DNA of 63,864 nt, filler included, from Choristocarpus tenellus KU-1152 (lineage: Eukaryota > Protista > Phaeophyceae): NCBI GenBank assembly GCA_964200185.2. It is 14 parts of 14 records of this genome, joined end to end, with 100 filler letters (N's around TTAATTAATTAA, not from the genome) between each part and the next. Parts side by side here need not be neighbours in the genome. Positions count along the whole stretch, not along the records: positions 14,367 to 20,396 come from CAXNAD020009125.1; 13 more parts are not named here. The stretch is one strand, 5' to 3'. The notes below the pieces were generated by a model. The model saw only the letters and a program-made list of their open reading frames with translations. It made no database searches and had not been told where the DNA came from. Position numbers and translations under genes: made by a program. Shown piece by piece: positions 13,646 through 20,396 of the stretch (position 1 is its first letter; each line of letters opens with the position of its first letter).

Positions 13646-14757
13646 CCCTGGCGAAATTTTCTTCCCCTTGAGTCTTGGATAACTGTCATGGAGGAGTGAA
13701 TGGGGAGTGGGCAAGTTCATGAGTTGTTGGTCAACGAGTGAATAATACTTTGTGTTGCGGCAGCGCCAGCGTAGTGCGCACGTTTTTACAGTAGGTGAGC
13801 AAAATCAATCTCAAGACTGGACGTACCCATTCATCTGGGAAGGTCTCCGTGCCTATCACGTACGAGAGAGAGTGTGTGTTCGACAGTAGTTTTTTGGCTT
13901 CCTGGTGGGAGAAGACACTTGCGGCGACCAGTACAATGTCGCTCCAATTGTAGTTTTGCGGGATCTCTCCTCTCAAGATGGAAAGTCCATCTCCAGCCAA
14001 GATATCAGTGCACATTCTTGCGAAATGCTGTTCCCCGATCTCTTTAGTGACTTAAACAAAGGGAGGGACATATTTCGCGTTTCAATTTGGAACCGGGGCA
14101 CGTGCAGTCAGGATTGCAAGGATGTCGGGTTAAGAATGTGCAGACAGAGGAATATATTGTGTGCAATGATCAAATGCCGCCAAGCACAACCGCACAGATA
14201 TGCCCGCAAAGTTGTCCAAGTGTTTGGGGGGTTAGGGTTAGGCCACCTGCTTTCTGTAGACATGGGNNNNNNNNNNNNNNNNNNNNNNNNNNNNNNNNNN
14301 NNNNNNNNNNTTAATTAATTAANNNNNNNNNNNNNNNNNNNNNNNNNNNNNNNNNNNNNNNNNNNNGGTGTAGACCTCCCCCCCCCTCCCAGATACTTTG
14401 GGTCAGAGAAGGGAAAAAATCGCCACTATGCAGCCACGGTACTGAAGAAGCACTAGCAGGAAAGACACAAAGGTGGGGTACCAGGGATTGTCTGTGCCTG
14501 CCTATTTCGCTAAATCTGGTGAATCGGTTCAATAAACATGCAGAAAACATGCTTTATCTGTCATGTGTAGCTGAGGGGTCTGTGTAAGATAACTTTAACG
14601 TTGAAAGCAAACTATATTAGGAATTCTTAAGCTAATAATATTGAAAGTATAACAGGCCAGGGCCCAGCCAAACAGCATAAAAAACGAATCACATTCTGGG
14701 TCAACCATTTCCCTCTATACAACACATGGTTTTTTAAAATGAACTCCAGGTAGGTGA

Positions 14758-15015
14758 GAGCGAAAGTATCTTACAGGGTAGGAGTTTTGCCCTGCTTGTC
14801 CATTTGGGGCTTGGATTTCCAAGGACTTTTTATGACATTTTACCTACTCGGAAATGTTTAGGAGTAGGTAAAATTTGTATGTTGTGAAAAGGTGTGTCTG
14901 GAACAAGGATATCGACACTTCCTGACAAACATGATAGCCAAAATTACATCAAACTTCAACATTGGGTTTTGGCCGCCAAACGGACACGGATCTACCCTCT
15001 AAGATACTTTGACTC
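14758..15015 (+). mobile_element. MITE family A, complete copy
   Basis: GAGCGAAAGTATCTTACAGGGTA ... TACCCTCTAAGATACTTTGACTC. The body aligns with the other A copies. No clean 4-bp TSD. Confidence 0.88.
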
Positions 15016-15139
15016 TGAAAGGTTAGTGGGTGGGGTCTAACGATCTTAGCATTAATTGATATTGCAAGTATGATAGTTACAACTGGATGAATGAATCAAA
15101 CCAACTCATAGGTTGGCAGGGTTGCATTTTATAGATCTC

Positions 15140-15337
15140 GAGAGAGGGCAAAAATATGCTATTTTGTACAATTGCAAGATGAGCCTTTGCTGAATTGTGG
15201 ATTCACATTGCGTGTAAATTTGCGTAAACTATTGTGCACATAAAGCAATGAAATGGAGGTGTTGCACAGGGTAAGAATGATTAATTGGAATGCAAAAGGG
15301 TTCTCAACCTTCCTACCTTTCAATTGGTCTGGCTAAT
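15140..15337 (+). repeat. Dispersed repeat; uninterrupted homologue of the sequence flanking MITE 8297-8627
   Basis: Aligns by eye to 8127-8296 joined to 8628-8677 (gagggcaaaaatatgc...ttttg.acaatt...aatgcaaaaggg...aacct.cctac...tcaatt). Confidence 0.7.
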
Positions 15338-15723
15338 ACTATCTGCTGGTTTGCTTTTAGCCATCATATATCTTAAGCACTCCTAATCGCTACACCGTAT
15401 TTATTACTATATTGACATTTTCCAAGTAATTCTGTAATTTTTTGTGTTATTTAAAAGAAAAAAATTGTCTTCACTTATTAAAAACTCTAGGGACTAATCT
15501 GACTCGTGGTCAGAGGCACTACACATTCGACTACGACTACTTCTCATCATTATATATTCTCGGAAATAATATGTATGACATGTACTACAGAAATCCTACT
15601 CCTCCTGTCTAATTGCCTAGGGGTAGTACCATTAAATGGTAGTACTATACTGCCTCCGTTGGTCCATTGCTTCTTGCGTATTGGGTTGAGCCATCCCACC
15701 TCTCATTGCTCCATCTCGTCCCT

Positions 15724-17247
15724 CTAATCTTGTAGTTGAAACGCTTTGGCGTCTCTCAGTAATGAGTGAAGGCTTGCTATCTCGTTTTTGATCTGGCGTT
15801 TTCGTGGTACAGGGATAACACTTTGTATTATTGTGAATAGGAAAGTATTGGATATATATCTACTAATAATGTGCTATTAATAGAAGTAGAAGCTGTAGTA
15901 GTATTAATTGTAATGGGTGGGCAATGAATAATCGAGAACAGTTTTCCCTGAAAGACGTCTGGCATCGATGGGGTTCAAACCTTCGAAATCCATACAGGGA
16001 ACGAACTATCATTTATTGATTTGATTGGTTCATTAGTATCATAATGTCACGCATTTGTTCGAACATGTAGTGATCCTCAAAACAAGGAGAAAACAATAGG
16101 CAGATAGGGTCAAGGAGAAGAAAGGGACATACACCATACTCGATCCCATGGTCAACAAAGGAACGCAAACGATATGTATATATATGTATGTATATATAGG
16201 ACTATGTAATAAAAAGAATGGCAAATTCATCAATCAAGTCCACCGAGATAAGAAAGTAGTGAGCAGAAAGAAAAAGGGCACTTCAAGGATCAGCTCCAGC
16301 ATCAAGGACCATAATCGGTTCAAGGGGTGAATATCCATAAGCACTTCGGAACATCTAGGTTTAAAGTCTTAACAATCCTCTTCTCCTCCAATGAAGAAAG
16401 AAGGTTCGGCAGGTAGGTATTTTACACGTAGTTGGTCAAGTCCGCTTTCGCATGATGGGCGACTGTTTCAACCTTTCATGAAGTATTTGGTTCCAAGCCC
16501 AACGCATCTGTGGCACCTGCTCAAAGTCTTCTGCAAGAGAAACACACTGATAAGCAGTTATGATGTCGAAAGCCTTGAGGTCATCTTGGAGGGCACCTCA
16601 CCCAGTTTTTCTCCATGTCTCTTCTCCCCTTTTGGTTTCTGAGTGTTGAGTTCTCCAACCATGAGGTTCTTGGGTGATCGATCATGTTCCATTTGCAACT
16701 GTGCAAATTACCTTGGGAGGTAATGCTATTTGTTAGTAGTGAAGATAAGGTGTGAAGCCTCACACAACCCCCTTTGCTGAAGGTGATTACATGGTTGAAG
16801 ATTAGAAGAGTGACCTTTGTGTGGTGTCTTCTCATTGCTTGTTTATTATTTATTTGTGCTTCCTATCTGAGTCAACGGTCATGTCAAAGTAGTTGGATAC
16901 AGAATAAATATCAATACACAATCCCATACATAATCTGGATGTACTATTTTATTAGTTGCATCACATGGACTCAATTCAACACAATAATCTCATATATATA
17001 CACAAAATAAGGTACACGTCACTATTGTCCTATTTTGCACAGCAACAGGAAACCTGTAAATGGTAAGAGTTTTCTTTTGCGTATACTGGGCCCAATGCAA
17101 TCGCATCCAGTTCTCTTCAGGGCTTACCTGTATGACACGAGGTGGTTCATACGTTTCCGTTTGTGGCTCAATGGAGCGCTGTAGGAATTTGCAGTGGTGG
17201 GCACGGAGTGAGACGAAATGATCATTTCTCGAAGTGTCCACACCCAT
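15724..17247 (-). CDS. Hypothetical small spliced gene divergent from CDC26
   Basis: Five phase-compatible GT-AG exons can be joined to give MGVDTSRNDH...PRVIQ / KPKGEKRHGEKL / EDFEQVPQMRWAWNQILHER / CSEVLMDIHPLNRLWSLMLELILE / IKNEIASLHSLLRDAKAFQLQD*. No homology recognised. Confidence 0.3.
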
Positions 17248-17537
17248 ACACGAGACAAGAGTTTCCAGTACTTCGGCTTCGAGCATCCAAAACTTTAGAT
17301 CAATCAAGTGGTACACCTACCACTCCATCATATAACTCTTTCCTGTACTTCTTGAACTGTTCAAATGTTTATTATACAGATGATGGTAAGATCGTCTGGT
17401 CAATCACACCCTCAATCGTTTCTATATAAATCTTGTAGATATTGGACACAAACGGGTATATATGTACCTTAATTGTTCATCAAAGGAGTTGGTTTATGGC
17501 ATCAACACATCGACTTTCATCACCCCCAATACAAACC

Positions 17538-17762
17538 ATGATTCATCGGAAGCCAACTAGAGTTGAGCTTACATCGGAAGACGCACAAGAATACGAAGAG
17601 TTGCAGAAGAAACGGGAGGCTGAGCGTCAGCAGGGAACTGCTCCGAAAGACGGGGACGGGGCAAAGAACGGGACAACAATCCAACCCTCTGCCACAGACG
17701 CAAGACGAGACGCCCTTGCTGCGAGGAAGGACGCCATTGCCGAGAGGATAGGGATTTCCTGA
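17538..17762 (+). CDS. CDC26: Anaphase-promoting complex subunit CDC26 (APC12), 74 aa, intronless
   Basis: The N-terminus MIHRKPTRVELTSEDAQEYEELQKKRE matches the conserved CDC26 motif M(L/I)RRKPTR(L/I)ELxxxDxxE(F/Y)E. It is followed by a charged disordered tail and ends in ERIG. Size is typical. Confidence 0.9.
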   Translation: MIHRKPTRVELTSEDAQEYEELQKKREAERQQGTAPKDGDGAKNGTTIQPSATDARRDALAARKDAIAERIGIS

Positions 17763-17799
17763 TCTTGAGCAAAAGGGGAAGCTTTAGAGTTTGCTTTCA

Positions 17800-18321
17800 A
17801 TGAAGGAAGTCGGGTTCTGGAATGATCCGAGGAACCTCGACGACCTCCGCCCTGATCCAAGGTTGTTCGTTGATGAAAGTTGGGGCTCGAAATCAGTAGA
17901 AGTAGCAGCCGTGATCCTATACATCAAAACTGGTTATATTGAGTCGTTTGAGCTGGGCTATTCATTCTGCAGATTTGGGTGCGGGTTGAAAGATGAAGTT
18001 GGTGACACTCCAGGAATGACTGAGATGGGATGCTGCACGCTCACGGACGGGGAGTACATTTGGCCGGAGGGTTATGAACACTACATACGCCGACATGCTG
18101 TGCGTCCACCGGATACTTTCATTCACCGTTCACTGGAAAACCTCAAGAGACTGCAGGATGTGCAGGAAGGGGGAAGGATGCGATGGGTGGAGGAGGAGGG
18201 GGCACCAGCAGTGTTGGACCAAGGGACCAAGACCTTCCTGGATGAGCGGACGACTTTGGGTACACGCGTTCCCCATTCCTCTAAGTCAGGACTCCTAGGA
18301 GAAAGGTGCTGTTTAGCTTAA
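17800..18321 (+). CDS. Uncharacterised 173-aa protein with Cys/His putative metal site; intronless; starts 37 nt after the CDC26 stop
   Basis: Clean ORF with PDPRLFVDESW, GYSFCRFGCG and MGCCTLTDGEYIWPEGYEHYIRRHAVRPPDTFI. As I recall, this motif pattern is typical of a family of bacterial and giant-virus hypothetical proteins. Ends in CCLA*. Confidence 0.85.
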   Translation: MKEVGFWNDPRNLDDLRPDPRLFVDESWGSKSVEVAAVILYIKTGYIESFELGYSFCRFGCGLKDEVGDTPGMTEMGCCTLTDGEYIWPEGYEHYIRRHAVRPPDTFIHRSLENLKRLQDVQEGGRMRWVEEEGAPAVLDQGTKTFLDERTTLGTRVPHSSKSGLLGERCCLA

Positions 18322-20331
18322 GGTCACTAGCTTGCAATTTTTGCATCCAAAACCAGTTCGGATAATATTGTCTTGTGTGCTGCAGTGGTGCCTATCAATG
18401 GGATATTGAATGAAGCTGGAAACAATCATTTCAAGCAACTTTATAATATTTATAATACTCTACGCTTTTCCTGCTATGGATCATGGTGAGCCCTTGAGAG
18501 AGGACGGGAGGAGTGGGCAAAAGTTTGTTTTGGTTTCAGGTATCAACACAAAAGAAAACGCCTCAGTCCACAATGCAGTGTGAAGGATTAGATGTGTGGA
18601 AGGGAGAAGAGAATTGTGATTCATCTCTTCGGTTGATGTAGAAGTCGGCGGAAGTAGCTAATGTTTCGTTTCGTTGCACCCTAGTACAATAACGTAACAT
18701 ACACATATGAAGGGTATAGCTGACGAAACTCATCTCATAGTGTGTAGTAATAAACACTTGTAAAATGTAATGTACAATAAGAAATGCAAATGGAAGTATT
18801 TCGCCCTTATGTCAGAGGGAAAAATGCGAGTCGAAGGTATTTGAATGCAAACGGAGAGAGTACAGCTCACCTCAGGTACAGCACCACTTGAACTCTACCC
18901 TCAGGCTTACACCTTTAAACCATATGTGTACATGCAGAACTTGTGTAGCGACAGATCCTGTGGACTCCTTGAGCTGTATAGCTAGGGTCTGCATGTTGAG
19001 ACAAACTTGTAGGCAAAGCAATGCCAAATTCAAATGCTCTTTTGTGTTATTTATTTCCCGGTCACTTCTATGTGAGTTTTACAGACTAGTTCCTGACATC
19101 TCTCTTTGCACAGCCAAATACACCCTGGATTAGCAAAAGGCTCACAACCCAGGAAAGAGGAAGACTTGCTTCCTGAGGGCTGTATTCAAGGGTGACAAAT
19201 AGTTCGCCCATACTGATGATCTTGCCAAGCATCATGAACAAATACGACTATCATTTTGGTATATCCTGATAGCCTCAGCCATCTCATCCTTTATTTTTTG
19301 GGATTTAGGGGTACTTACAAGATGCATCATGATTGCTTGTCAGCCCAATCCTGCCCAGCTTGGTTTTGGCCATAGAGAGACAGTACTTCAAACAGGAGAA
19401 CAAGTTGCCTTCCATGTTGCGCTTGCTGTGCTGTAGGGGGCAGCCGACCCGAGTGCTGTTTCTATATTTCAACAAAAAAATGATGGTTTTGAAGCAGATC
19501 ACCAGGTAGTAATGATGTGTGTGGTTGATTGTCGACACTTTGCACAAAAACGTAAGATAATAGTGCTCCTCCTACATAGTCACTCACCATGCAATCACCC
19601 CCTTGCTCGGACCTGGCACACTTCTTGGTCTTAACATCCTTGCCCCAAAGAATCTCGAACTTTGCCGATACACAGGTAACCATATCTGAAATATTTGTAT
19701 GCCCAGGAAACAGGACCCCTCAGAAGGGTCTTCGACAGATAGACCAAAATCGTGTGAACGCTTTAATCTGAAGTAGTATTCATTGCACGGCGCAGTGTTG
19801 TCACACACAGGTAGGTATGATATTGTAGTAGTTTCATTTTTTAGAAAGAAGTCTTTTGAAAGTGACCACTCTTAACACAAGACCTTTAGAATTCAGAGTG
19901 ATTCGTTGAAACCCACAGTGGGATCTTCTATAGCATTTGAATTTTAGTTCTGCTGGAGGAACAAACTTGGAATTTTCTAATCCATGGTGTAGTTTGTCGG
20001 TAGTGGGGAGCTTGTTGAAATGAGACCCAATCTGGCGATGTTTTGTGCGCTTGTGCTGGCTCTCTTATAATATCAAGGCGTGCATCTACCTTACGCAGTG
20101 ACAATGGTGATGCTTGTTGTTTGTGTGTTTTGTCATAACCCCATATGTTGTGTGCTAACCCATATGTTCTATGTACCACTACTATTCCTACTTCTACTTT
20201 GCTGCAAGTACTACTGCTACCACTACCATCACAATATAAATCGACAGCTGCACGCATCTTATGATAATTGTCTGAAATTCCTCTTTTCCGCCTCTGCCCC
20301 TTCTTCTAGTGTTATTGTTATGGTTGTCGAA

Positions 20332-20396
20332 GAGTAAAAGTATCTTAGAGGGTACGAGTTTTGCCCTGTTTGTCCATTTGGTGCTTGACTTCCCAT
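20332..20396 (+). mobile_element. MITE family A, left end (truncated by spacer)
   Basis: GAGTAAAAGTATCTTAGAGGGTACGAGTTTTGCCCTGTTTGTCCATTTGG. Confidence 0.85.

Follow-up and report, generated by a model that had tools for sequence, protein, structure and literature searches.

In land plants and green algae, CDC26, a subunit of the APC/C, shares a bicistronic locus with TTM3 (Lorenzo-Orts et al. 2019, as cited in PMC6973038, PMC11062462 and PMC11291117), and this locus is also known as CPuORF HG30 (PMC3426882). For the Arabidopsis pair, the translated second ORF is reported to protect the CDC26 ORF from nonsense-mediated decay (PMC11291117). In green-algal bicistrons, ATG is depleted before the second ORF, and leaky scanning, tested in vivo, responds to the strength of the ORF1 start (PMC11291117). 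A locus of the brown alga Choristocarpus tenellus KU-1152 (assembly GCA_964200185.2) raises the question of whether CDC26 also became the first cistron of a leaky-scanned mRNA in stramenopiles, with another partner, as a sequence-only reading had proposed. The window, i.e. the whole stretch of DNA that was analysed, comprises 63,864 nucleotides of joined parts. The locus lies in the piece from 14367 to 20396 (record CAXNAD020009125.1), and all positions without a locus name are counted along the joined stretch.

Two adjacent reading frames

An ORF scan of the piece found the two same-strand ORFs of the sequence-only reading, both uninterrupted, on the + strand and 37 nucleotides apart. The first one (17538-17762, 74 amino acids), the putative first cistron, encodes CDC26 (ANAPC_CDC26). 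It matches the Pfam profile PF10471 with 38.6 bits (E 2e-9), above the curated cut-off of 24.5, and the N-terminal motif M-x-x-R-K-P-T-R is kept in the alignment of its orthologues. A single-sequence search with this protein returned no homologues, while a profile search did retrieve CDC26 proteins. After the spacer (17763-17799) follows ORF2 (17800-18321, 173 amino acids), the putative second cistron, which weakly matches PF25535 (DUF7919). For Ectocarpus, Ascophyllum and Discosporangium, the NCBI records do not include CDC26 among the genes called at this locus, so that a core cell-cycle gene missed there is recovered here at its brown-algal locus.

An in-frame ATG is also present at 17496, 14 codons 5' of the CDC26 start. 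Alignment with the orthologues speaks for 17538 as the real start codon, and the transcript therefore probably begins, or is spliced in, 3' of 17496.

Conservation of the gene pair

The locus was compared with eight other brown-algal loci and with L055, which carries a more distant ORF2 homologue (P0053, run SRR29150329); together with the Choristocarpus locus they form a set of ten. Each of the eight other brown-algal loci retrieved has CDC26 directly 5' of ORF2 on the same strand, and in L055 a divergent CDC26 is found 127 nucleotides upstream of the ORF2 homologue. The adjacency anticipated for linked orthologues is thus present in nine of nine, and CDC26 is the upstream ORF in 10/10 loci, as in the green CDC26-TTM3 bicistron. 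Both ORFs are under purifying selection, with dN far below dS (dN/dS about 0.1-0.3 where dS is measurable). Synonymous divergence between loci has reached saturation or comes close to it (dS from 0.85 to beyond measure). Two independent colinear ORFs, each with its own start and stop, are therefore conserved, which is the arrangement by which a bicistron is recognized. By these comparisons the pair is evidently real, conserved and under selection.

The very short spacer, which the sequence-only reading had noted as leaving almost no room for a 3' UTR, poly(A) site and promoter, is indeed 37 nucleotides long in Choristocarpus, but its length is not conserved: the ten spacers range from 33 to 502 nucleotides (33-39 in three species), and it is the lack of AUG that is kept. 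The spacers fail to align even between two close species, their frame offsets include 0, 1 and 2 (a multiple of three in 3/10 loci), and CDC26 ends with any of the three stop codons, depending on the locus. This variation excludes a conserved fusion of the two frames. The check for splicing that would fuse the frames likewise found no conserved frame relation and no strong splice acceptor.

Outside this set, CDC26 was not found near the ORF2 homologues of Aphanomyces (L054) and of two further eukaryotes (L056 and L011), using the profile search that was able to detect the L055 copy; the Aphanomyces homologue sits head-to-head with a MatE gene. As CDC26 is not found near these homologues, the link appears to be lineage-restricted, with the partner free-standing elsewhere. 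In the eukaryotic contig L056 (2610-3516), the ORF2 homologue is head-to-head with a small BBIP10-like ORF at a distance of about 200 nucleotides. A convergent gene with an Img2 domain lies 3' of the pair in Ascophyllum (L003, 4119-5672) and Ectocarpus (L004, 4359-5834).

Depletion of AUG upstream of ORF2

No ATG occurs in any frame between the starts at 17538 and 17800, in agreement with the sequence-only reading, which leaves an AUG-free scanning zone of 259 nucleotides (17541-17799) made of the CDC26 body and the spacer. The codon usage described for CDC26 was also found: all eight NAY codons followed by G are NAC (GAC six times, TAC and AAC once each). For ORF2, the described seven NAT-G out of nine were counted (7 NAT, 2 NAC), but one of the seven is a His codon, so that the proportion for Asp, Tyr and Asn is 6/8. 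Taken by itself, the Choristocarpus locus gives a modest signal (P about 0.014 under the synonymous null, 0.018-0.05 with shuffles, Fisher 0.002-0.011), and one longer ATG-free stretch, of 281 nucleotides, is present elsewhere in the piece, in non-coding DNA at 15290.

The signal is decisive only across the ten orthologous loci, which share ancestry, so that the pooled P values given here overstate independence. When each locus was recoded synonymously with its own codon use, 13.9 out-of-frame ATGs were expected within the ten CDC26 ORFs and none was observed, versus 65 observed and 55 expected within ORF2. At NAY-G sites, CDC26 has 36 NAC and no NAT, and ORF2 60 NAC and 49 NAT (Fisher 3e-8). 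CDC26 codons of the same type without a following G are NAC in 23 and NAT in 10 cases, which differs from the 36/0 at NAY-G (Fisher 3e-4). The avoidance extends to codons 14, 15 and 19, with NAC at 25/25 sites. The AUG avoidance foreseen for linked orthologues is thus borne out, and since other synonymous sites are saturated, it is not simple inheritance and argues for ongoing selection.

The spacers show the same feature. In 2,042 nucleotides of pooled spacer, ATG occurs 3 times where 22.5 were expected, and none of the other 63 trinucleotides has a lower ratio; CAT, the reverse complement, is at a normal level (30 versus 31.5 expected). All three remaining AUGs have a pyrimidine at -3. Over the ten loci, the interval from one start to the other contains 0.9 ATG/kb, compared with 16/kb in the upstream flank and 21.7/kb in the flank that follows ORF2. 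AUG is therefore depleted from CDC26 and the inter-ORF region and not from ORF2, the pattern by which a leaky-scanning bicistron is identified. The Discosporangium CDC26 contains one in-frame internal Met, in a fair context. Non-brown CDC26 genes from metagenomes freely contain internal ATGs, which in 20 of 25 loci occur as early as the first 21 codons.

Start contexts, splice sites and RNA structure

In 10/10 loci, position -3 of the CDC26 start is a purine and position +4 is not G, a context that appears usable but not optimal, and not obviously weak. Since the purine is present in all ten loci, leakage past this start may be low. The ORF2 start has a pyrimidine at -3 in Choristocarpus, L001 and L005.

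None of the acceptor-like sites in the orthologous spacers is stronger than those in shuffled sequences. Introns in the spacers were considered as a general feature and rejected, as these sites are at shuffle level and the spacers are AUG-poor throughout. Acceptor-like sites are found 3-10 nucleotides before the CDC26 AUG in four loci (L002, position 1934; L004, 2198; L005, 2026; L008, 2024) and were not found there in Choristocarpus or Discosporangium, which suggests a 5' UTR intron in the later-branching brown algae. Contigs L007 and L055 begin 5 and 7 nucleotides 5' of the CDC26 AUG, in the region of the acceptor-like site of several species; if they are RNA contigs, a break at such an intron would fit these starts. 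No unusual RNA structure was detected in the AUG-free zone (z 0.15), and a search of Rfam gave no match.

Coverage of the locus by sequencing runs

No run recorded as RNA contains the stretch, but three runs without a recorded type do (X1, X2 and X3). X1 and X3 cover the region evenly, in a DNA-like manner. X2 has zero depth on the unique flanks at 15400-16687, 17171-17492 and 19908-20200, and a single contig from 17598 to 19340 with a depth of 336 and no gap, joint or difference, beyond which only scraps with a depth of 2-5 are found. Because depth is lacking on the unique flanks and high on the ORFs, we interpret X2 as an RNA run in which one unspliced transcript dominates, its type being judged from depth. 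Apart from roughly the first quarter of CDC26, this contig covers both ORFs and the spacer, together with a tail of about 1 kb, the latter a putative 3' UTR (18322-19340) whose end is that of the contig rather than a mapped poly(A) site. It starts 60 nucleotides inside CDC26, so that the CDC26 AUG lies outside it, and no pyrimidine tract precedes 17598. The continuity expected over both ORFs is thus seen from this point onwards in an RNA-like contig without a joint. Co-transcription of CDC26 and ORF2 is indicated but not proven, as contigs show neither strand nor RNA ends and often lose 5' tips, and one contig over two genes is not the same as a single molecule.

About 500 nucleotides 5' of CDC26, positions 16700-17040 hold a very high-copy repeat, with a summed contig depth of 1e4-1e5 in the DNA-like runs and also present in X2, which is probably a short interspersed element. 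Three related copies of 25-65 nucleotides (14757-14821, 14993-15016 and 20331-20395), direct and inverted, 86-96% alike and resembling transposon ends, were noted towards the two ends of the piece.

Proposed expression of the locus and alternative explanations

We consider it likely that CDC26 and the DUF7919 ORF are carried by one bicistronic mRNA that is read by leaky scanning. The idea of CDC26 as a leaky-scanned first cistron is supported by the linkage in 9/9 other loci, the AUG avoidance, the non-CYTH partner and the X2 contig. A single capped Pol II transcript would carry CDC26 first and the DUF7919 ORF second. Part of the scanning ribosomes would initiate at the CDC26 AUG, and the remaining ones would bypass it, scan 250-805 nucleotides kept free of AUG and initiate at ORF2, so that both ORFs would be translated from one molecule. 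By analogy with Arabidopsis CDC26-TTM3 (PMC11291117), translation of ORF2 may guard the short CDC26 ORF against nonsense-mediated decay. The ORF2 product would be prenylated and probably zinc-binding.

The main rival is a gene with two 5' ends, in which a long isoform makes CDC26, with ORF2 translated poorly or not at all, and a short one has its 5' end, set by transcription start or by splicing, closely behind the CDC26 AUG, so that the rest of CDC26 and the spacer serve ORF2 as an ordinary AUG-free 5' UTR. This would account for the same AUG depletion; the X2 contig does start inside CDC26, at 17598, and the acceptor-like sites close to the AUG in L002, L004, L005 and L008 make an alternative acceptor nearby conceivable. 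However, the avoidance at codons 14-19 lies upstream of 17598 in Choristocarpus (17580, 17592) and is present in all orthologues, so that a second end would be needed within about 40 nucleotides after the AUG in every species, over a saturated synonymous distance. With no pyrimidine tract before 17598, no joint in X2 and contigs being unable to show an RNA start, we regard this arrangement as unlikely, although it is the one to which we give most weight after leaky scanning. A bicistronic mRNA on which ORF2 is reached by re-initiation after translation of CDC26 is considerably less probable. CDC26 is short (40-100 codons over the loci) with a purine at -3 of its start, and the spacers are AUG-poor, as such a process would have it, but re-initiation needs AUG-free sequence only past the CDC26 stop and leaves the 36/36 NAC-G sites and the 0 versus 13.9 AUGs inside CDC26 unexplained. 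It is this depletion inside CDC26, and not just in the spacer, that favours leaky scanning, and tests in green algae argue against re-initiation after ORFs of such size (PMC11291117).

Two further explanations appear highly improbable, each to about the same degree. The two ORFs might be separate, tightly packed monocistronic genes, with the depletion being a by-product of codon bias in CDC26 and of the spacer serving as ORF2 5' UTR; CDC26 does prefer C-ending codons generally (23 NAC versus 10 NAT where no G follows), and spacers of up to 502 nucleotides could house a 3' end and a promoter. Yet NAT is excluded only where G follows (Fisher 3e-4), the spacer is reduced to 33-39 nucleotides in three species and is AUG-poor over its entire length, which neither a 3' UTR nor a promoter needs, and the X2 contig is unbroken across both ORFs. 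Alternatively, ORF2 might be expressed as a fusion protein, by read-through, frameshift or splicing, or by internal ribosome entry in the spacer. The number of spacer nucleotides is divisible by three in three of the ten loci and a CDC26-CYTH fusion is annotated in Apatococcus, but frame offsets of 0, 1 and 2 and all three stop codons are represented, no acceptor-like site beats the shuffles, X2 contains no joint, and the spacers, unalignable between two close species, have no stable structure.

The ORF2 protein

Leaky scanning would deliver as second product a protein that is assigned to a eukaryotic subfamily of DUF7919. The match of Choristocarpus ORF2 to PF25535 (20.2 bits) is below the cut-off of 27, and that of its L055 relative (31.5 bits) is above it. 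The Pfam search gave no CYTH match in ORF2, which bears out the claim of a non-CYTH second gene, the match being to DUF7919 instead. Ten homologues were retrieved by sequence search, mostly brown-algal, and every one with a species name is from a brown alga: Discosporangium (58%), Ascophyllum, Ectocarpus, Undaria and Sphacelaria. In a quick tree, ORF2 is sister to the Discosporangium protein (SH-aLRT 94), which suggests that its source is probably a brown alga of the Discosporangium order that branched off early. A profile search with ORF2 returned 2,036 relatives, the closest of which form a broad eukaryote-type clade that includes oomycete and foraminiferan proteins (SH-aLRT 97, quick tree), the more distant ones being bacterial and viral DUF7919-like proteins. 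A recent transfer from bacteria was considered and rejected as unsupported, as the gene lies inside the eukaryote-type clade and the bacterial and viral DUF7919 proteins are more distant.

Across 114 sequences, four residues hardly vary (C57, C61, H94 and H99), which suggests a possible zinc site. A Cys at position -4 is found in 12/13 brown-algal, 9/49 other eukaryote-type and 0/27 outer-clade proteins; in Choristocarpus this C-terminal end (18307-18318, + strand) resembles a CaaX box, a prenylation signal predicted from the motif only. Our best guess is that ORF2 encodes a small membrane-anchored zinc-binding protein. Its structure model, a confident one (pLDDT 90.6), matches DUF7919 clusters in fold and features, and no solved structure was matched, by sequence or by fold. 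Over the N-terminal 1-120 residues, ORF2 resembles DUF7919 proteins from bacteria, phages and protists, both in profile searches and in its predicted fold (TM 0.5-0.56), whereas the eukaryotic subfamily differs from the other members by a C-terminal extension, often with the Cys at -4. A fold like that of model residues 1-135 (TM about 0.5, borderline) was also seen inside actinobacterial TNT-domain and phage proteins, a likeness that implies no function.

Comparison with known bicistrons and origin of the pair

Like green CDC26-TTM3, the brown-algal locus has a short CDC26 first and a longer unrelated ORF next on the same strand, in an arrangement conserved across a whole lineage. Unlike it, the host is a stramenopile, the partner is of the DUF7919 family with a CaaX-like end and not a CYTH/TTM enzyme, and the locus is described here from its sequence, with a putative transcript and putative products. 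The locus thus appears to work like CDC26-TTM3, yet falls outside that family because its partner is not CYTH. With the green-algal leaky-scanning bicistrons (PMC11291117, PMC11892635) it shares a short ORF1, a short, unconserved inter-ORF region and ATG depletion 5' of ORF2 but not inside it; it differs from them by the supergroup and by an ORF1 start context that is not obviously weak. With about 0.05 of the flank density and a spacer observed/expected ratio of 0.13, ATG is more strongly depleted here than in the green algae, whose medians of 0.43-0.49 were obtained with different nulls.

We see an even chance that brown algae and a close outgroup independently made CDC26 the first cistron of a leaky-scanned mRNA by capturing a free-standing DUF7919 gene. 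In that case, two eukaryotic supergroups would each have turned the same essential APC/C subunit into a first cistron, with unrelated partners, which would point to a property of CDC26 itself: its ORF is tiny and would profit from translation of another ORF behind it. In the literature searched, which included few subscription papers, nothing relevant was found on nuclear bicistrons or polycistrons of brown algae or stramenopiles or on brown-algal CDC26; within that scope the locus would be the first nuclear bicistron described for a stramenopile and would extend cap-dependent nuclear bicistronic expression to this group. A natural second case of CDC26 as first cistron with an unrelated partner makes the question raised by Arabidopsis testable, namely whether the pairing serves the function of the partner (polyphosphate metabolism) or the need of CDC26 for a translated downstream ORF. 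The test on NAY-G sites and spacer AUGs could be run genome-wide for further hidden bicistrons of brown algae, and the locus represents a native two-gene cassette for seaweed genetics.

Among the CDC26 genes from a scan of metagenomes, none was both stramenopile-like and accompanied by a recognisable partner. In the green lineage, P0035 of Apatococcus lobatus is annotated as one CDC26-CYTH protein, which is either a real fusion or a gene model joining two green cistrons. The metagenome contig L017 carries two tandem CDC26-like ORFs (293-679 and from about 860), the first of which has a UBA-like extension, as judged by eye.
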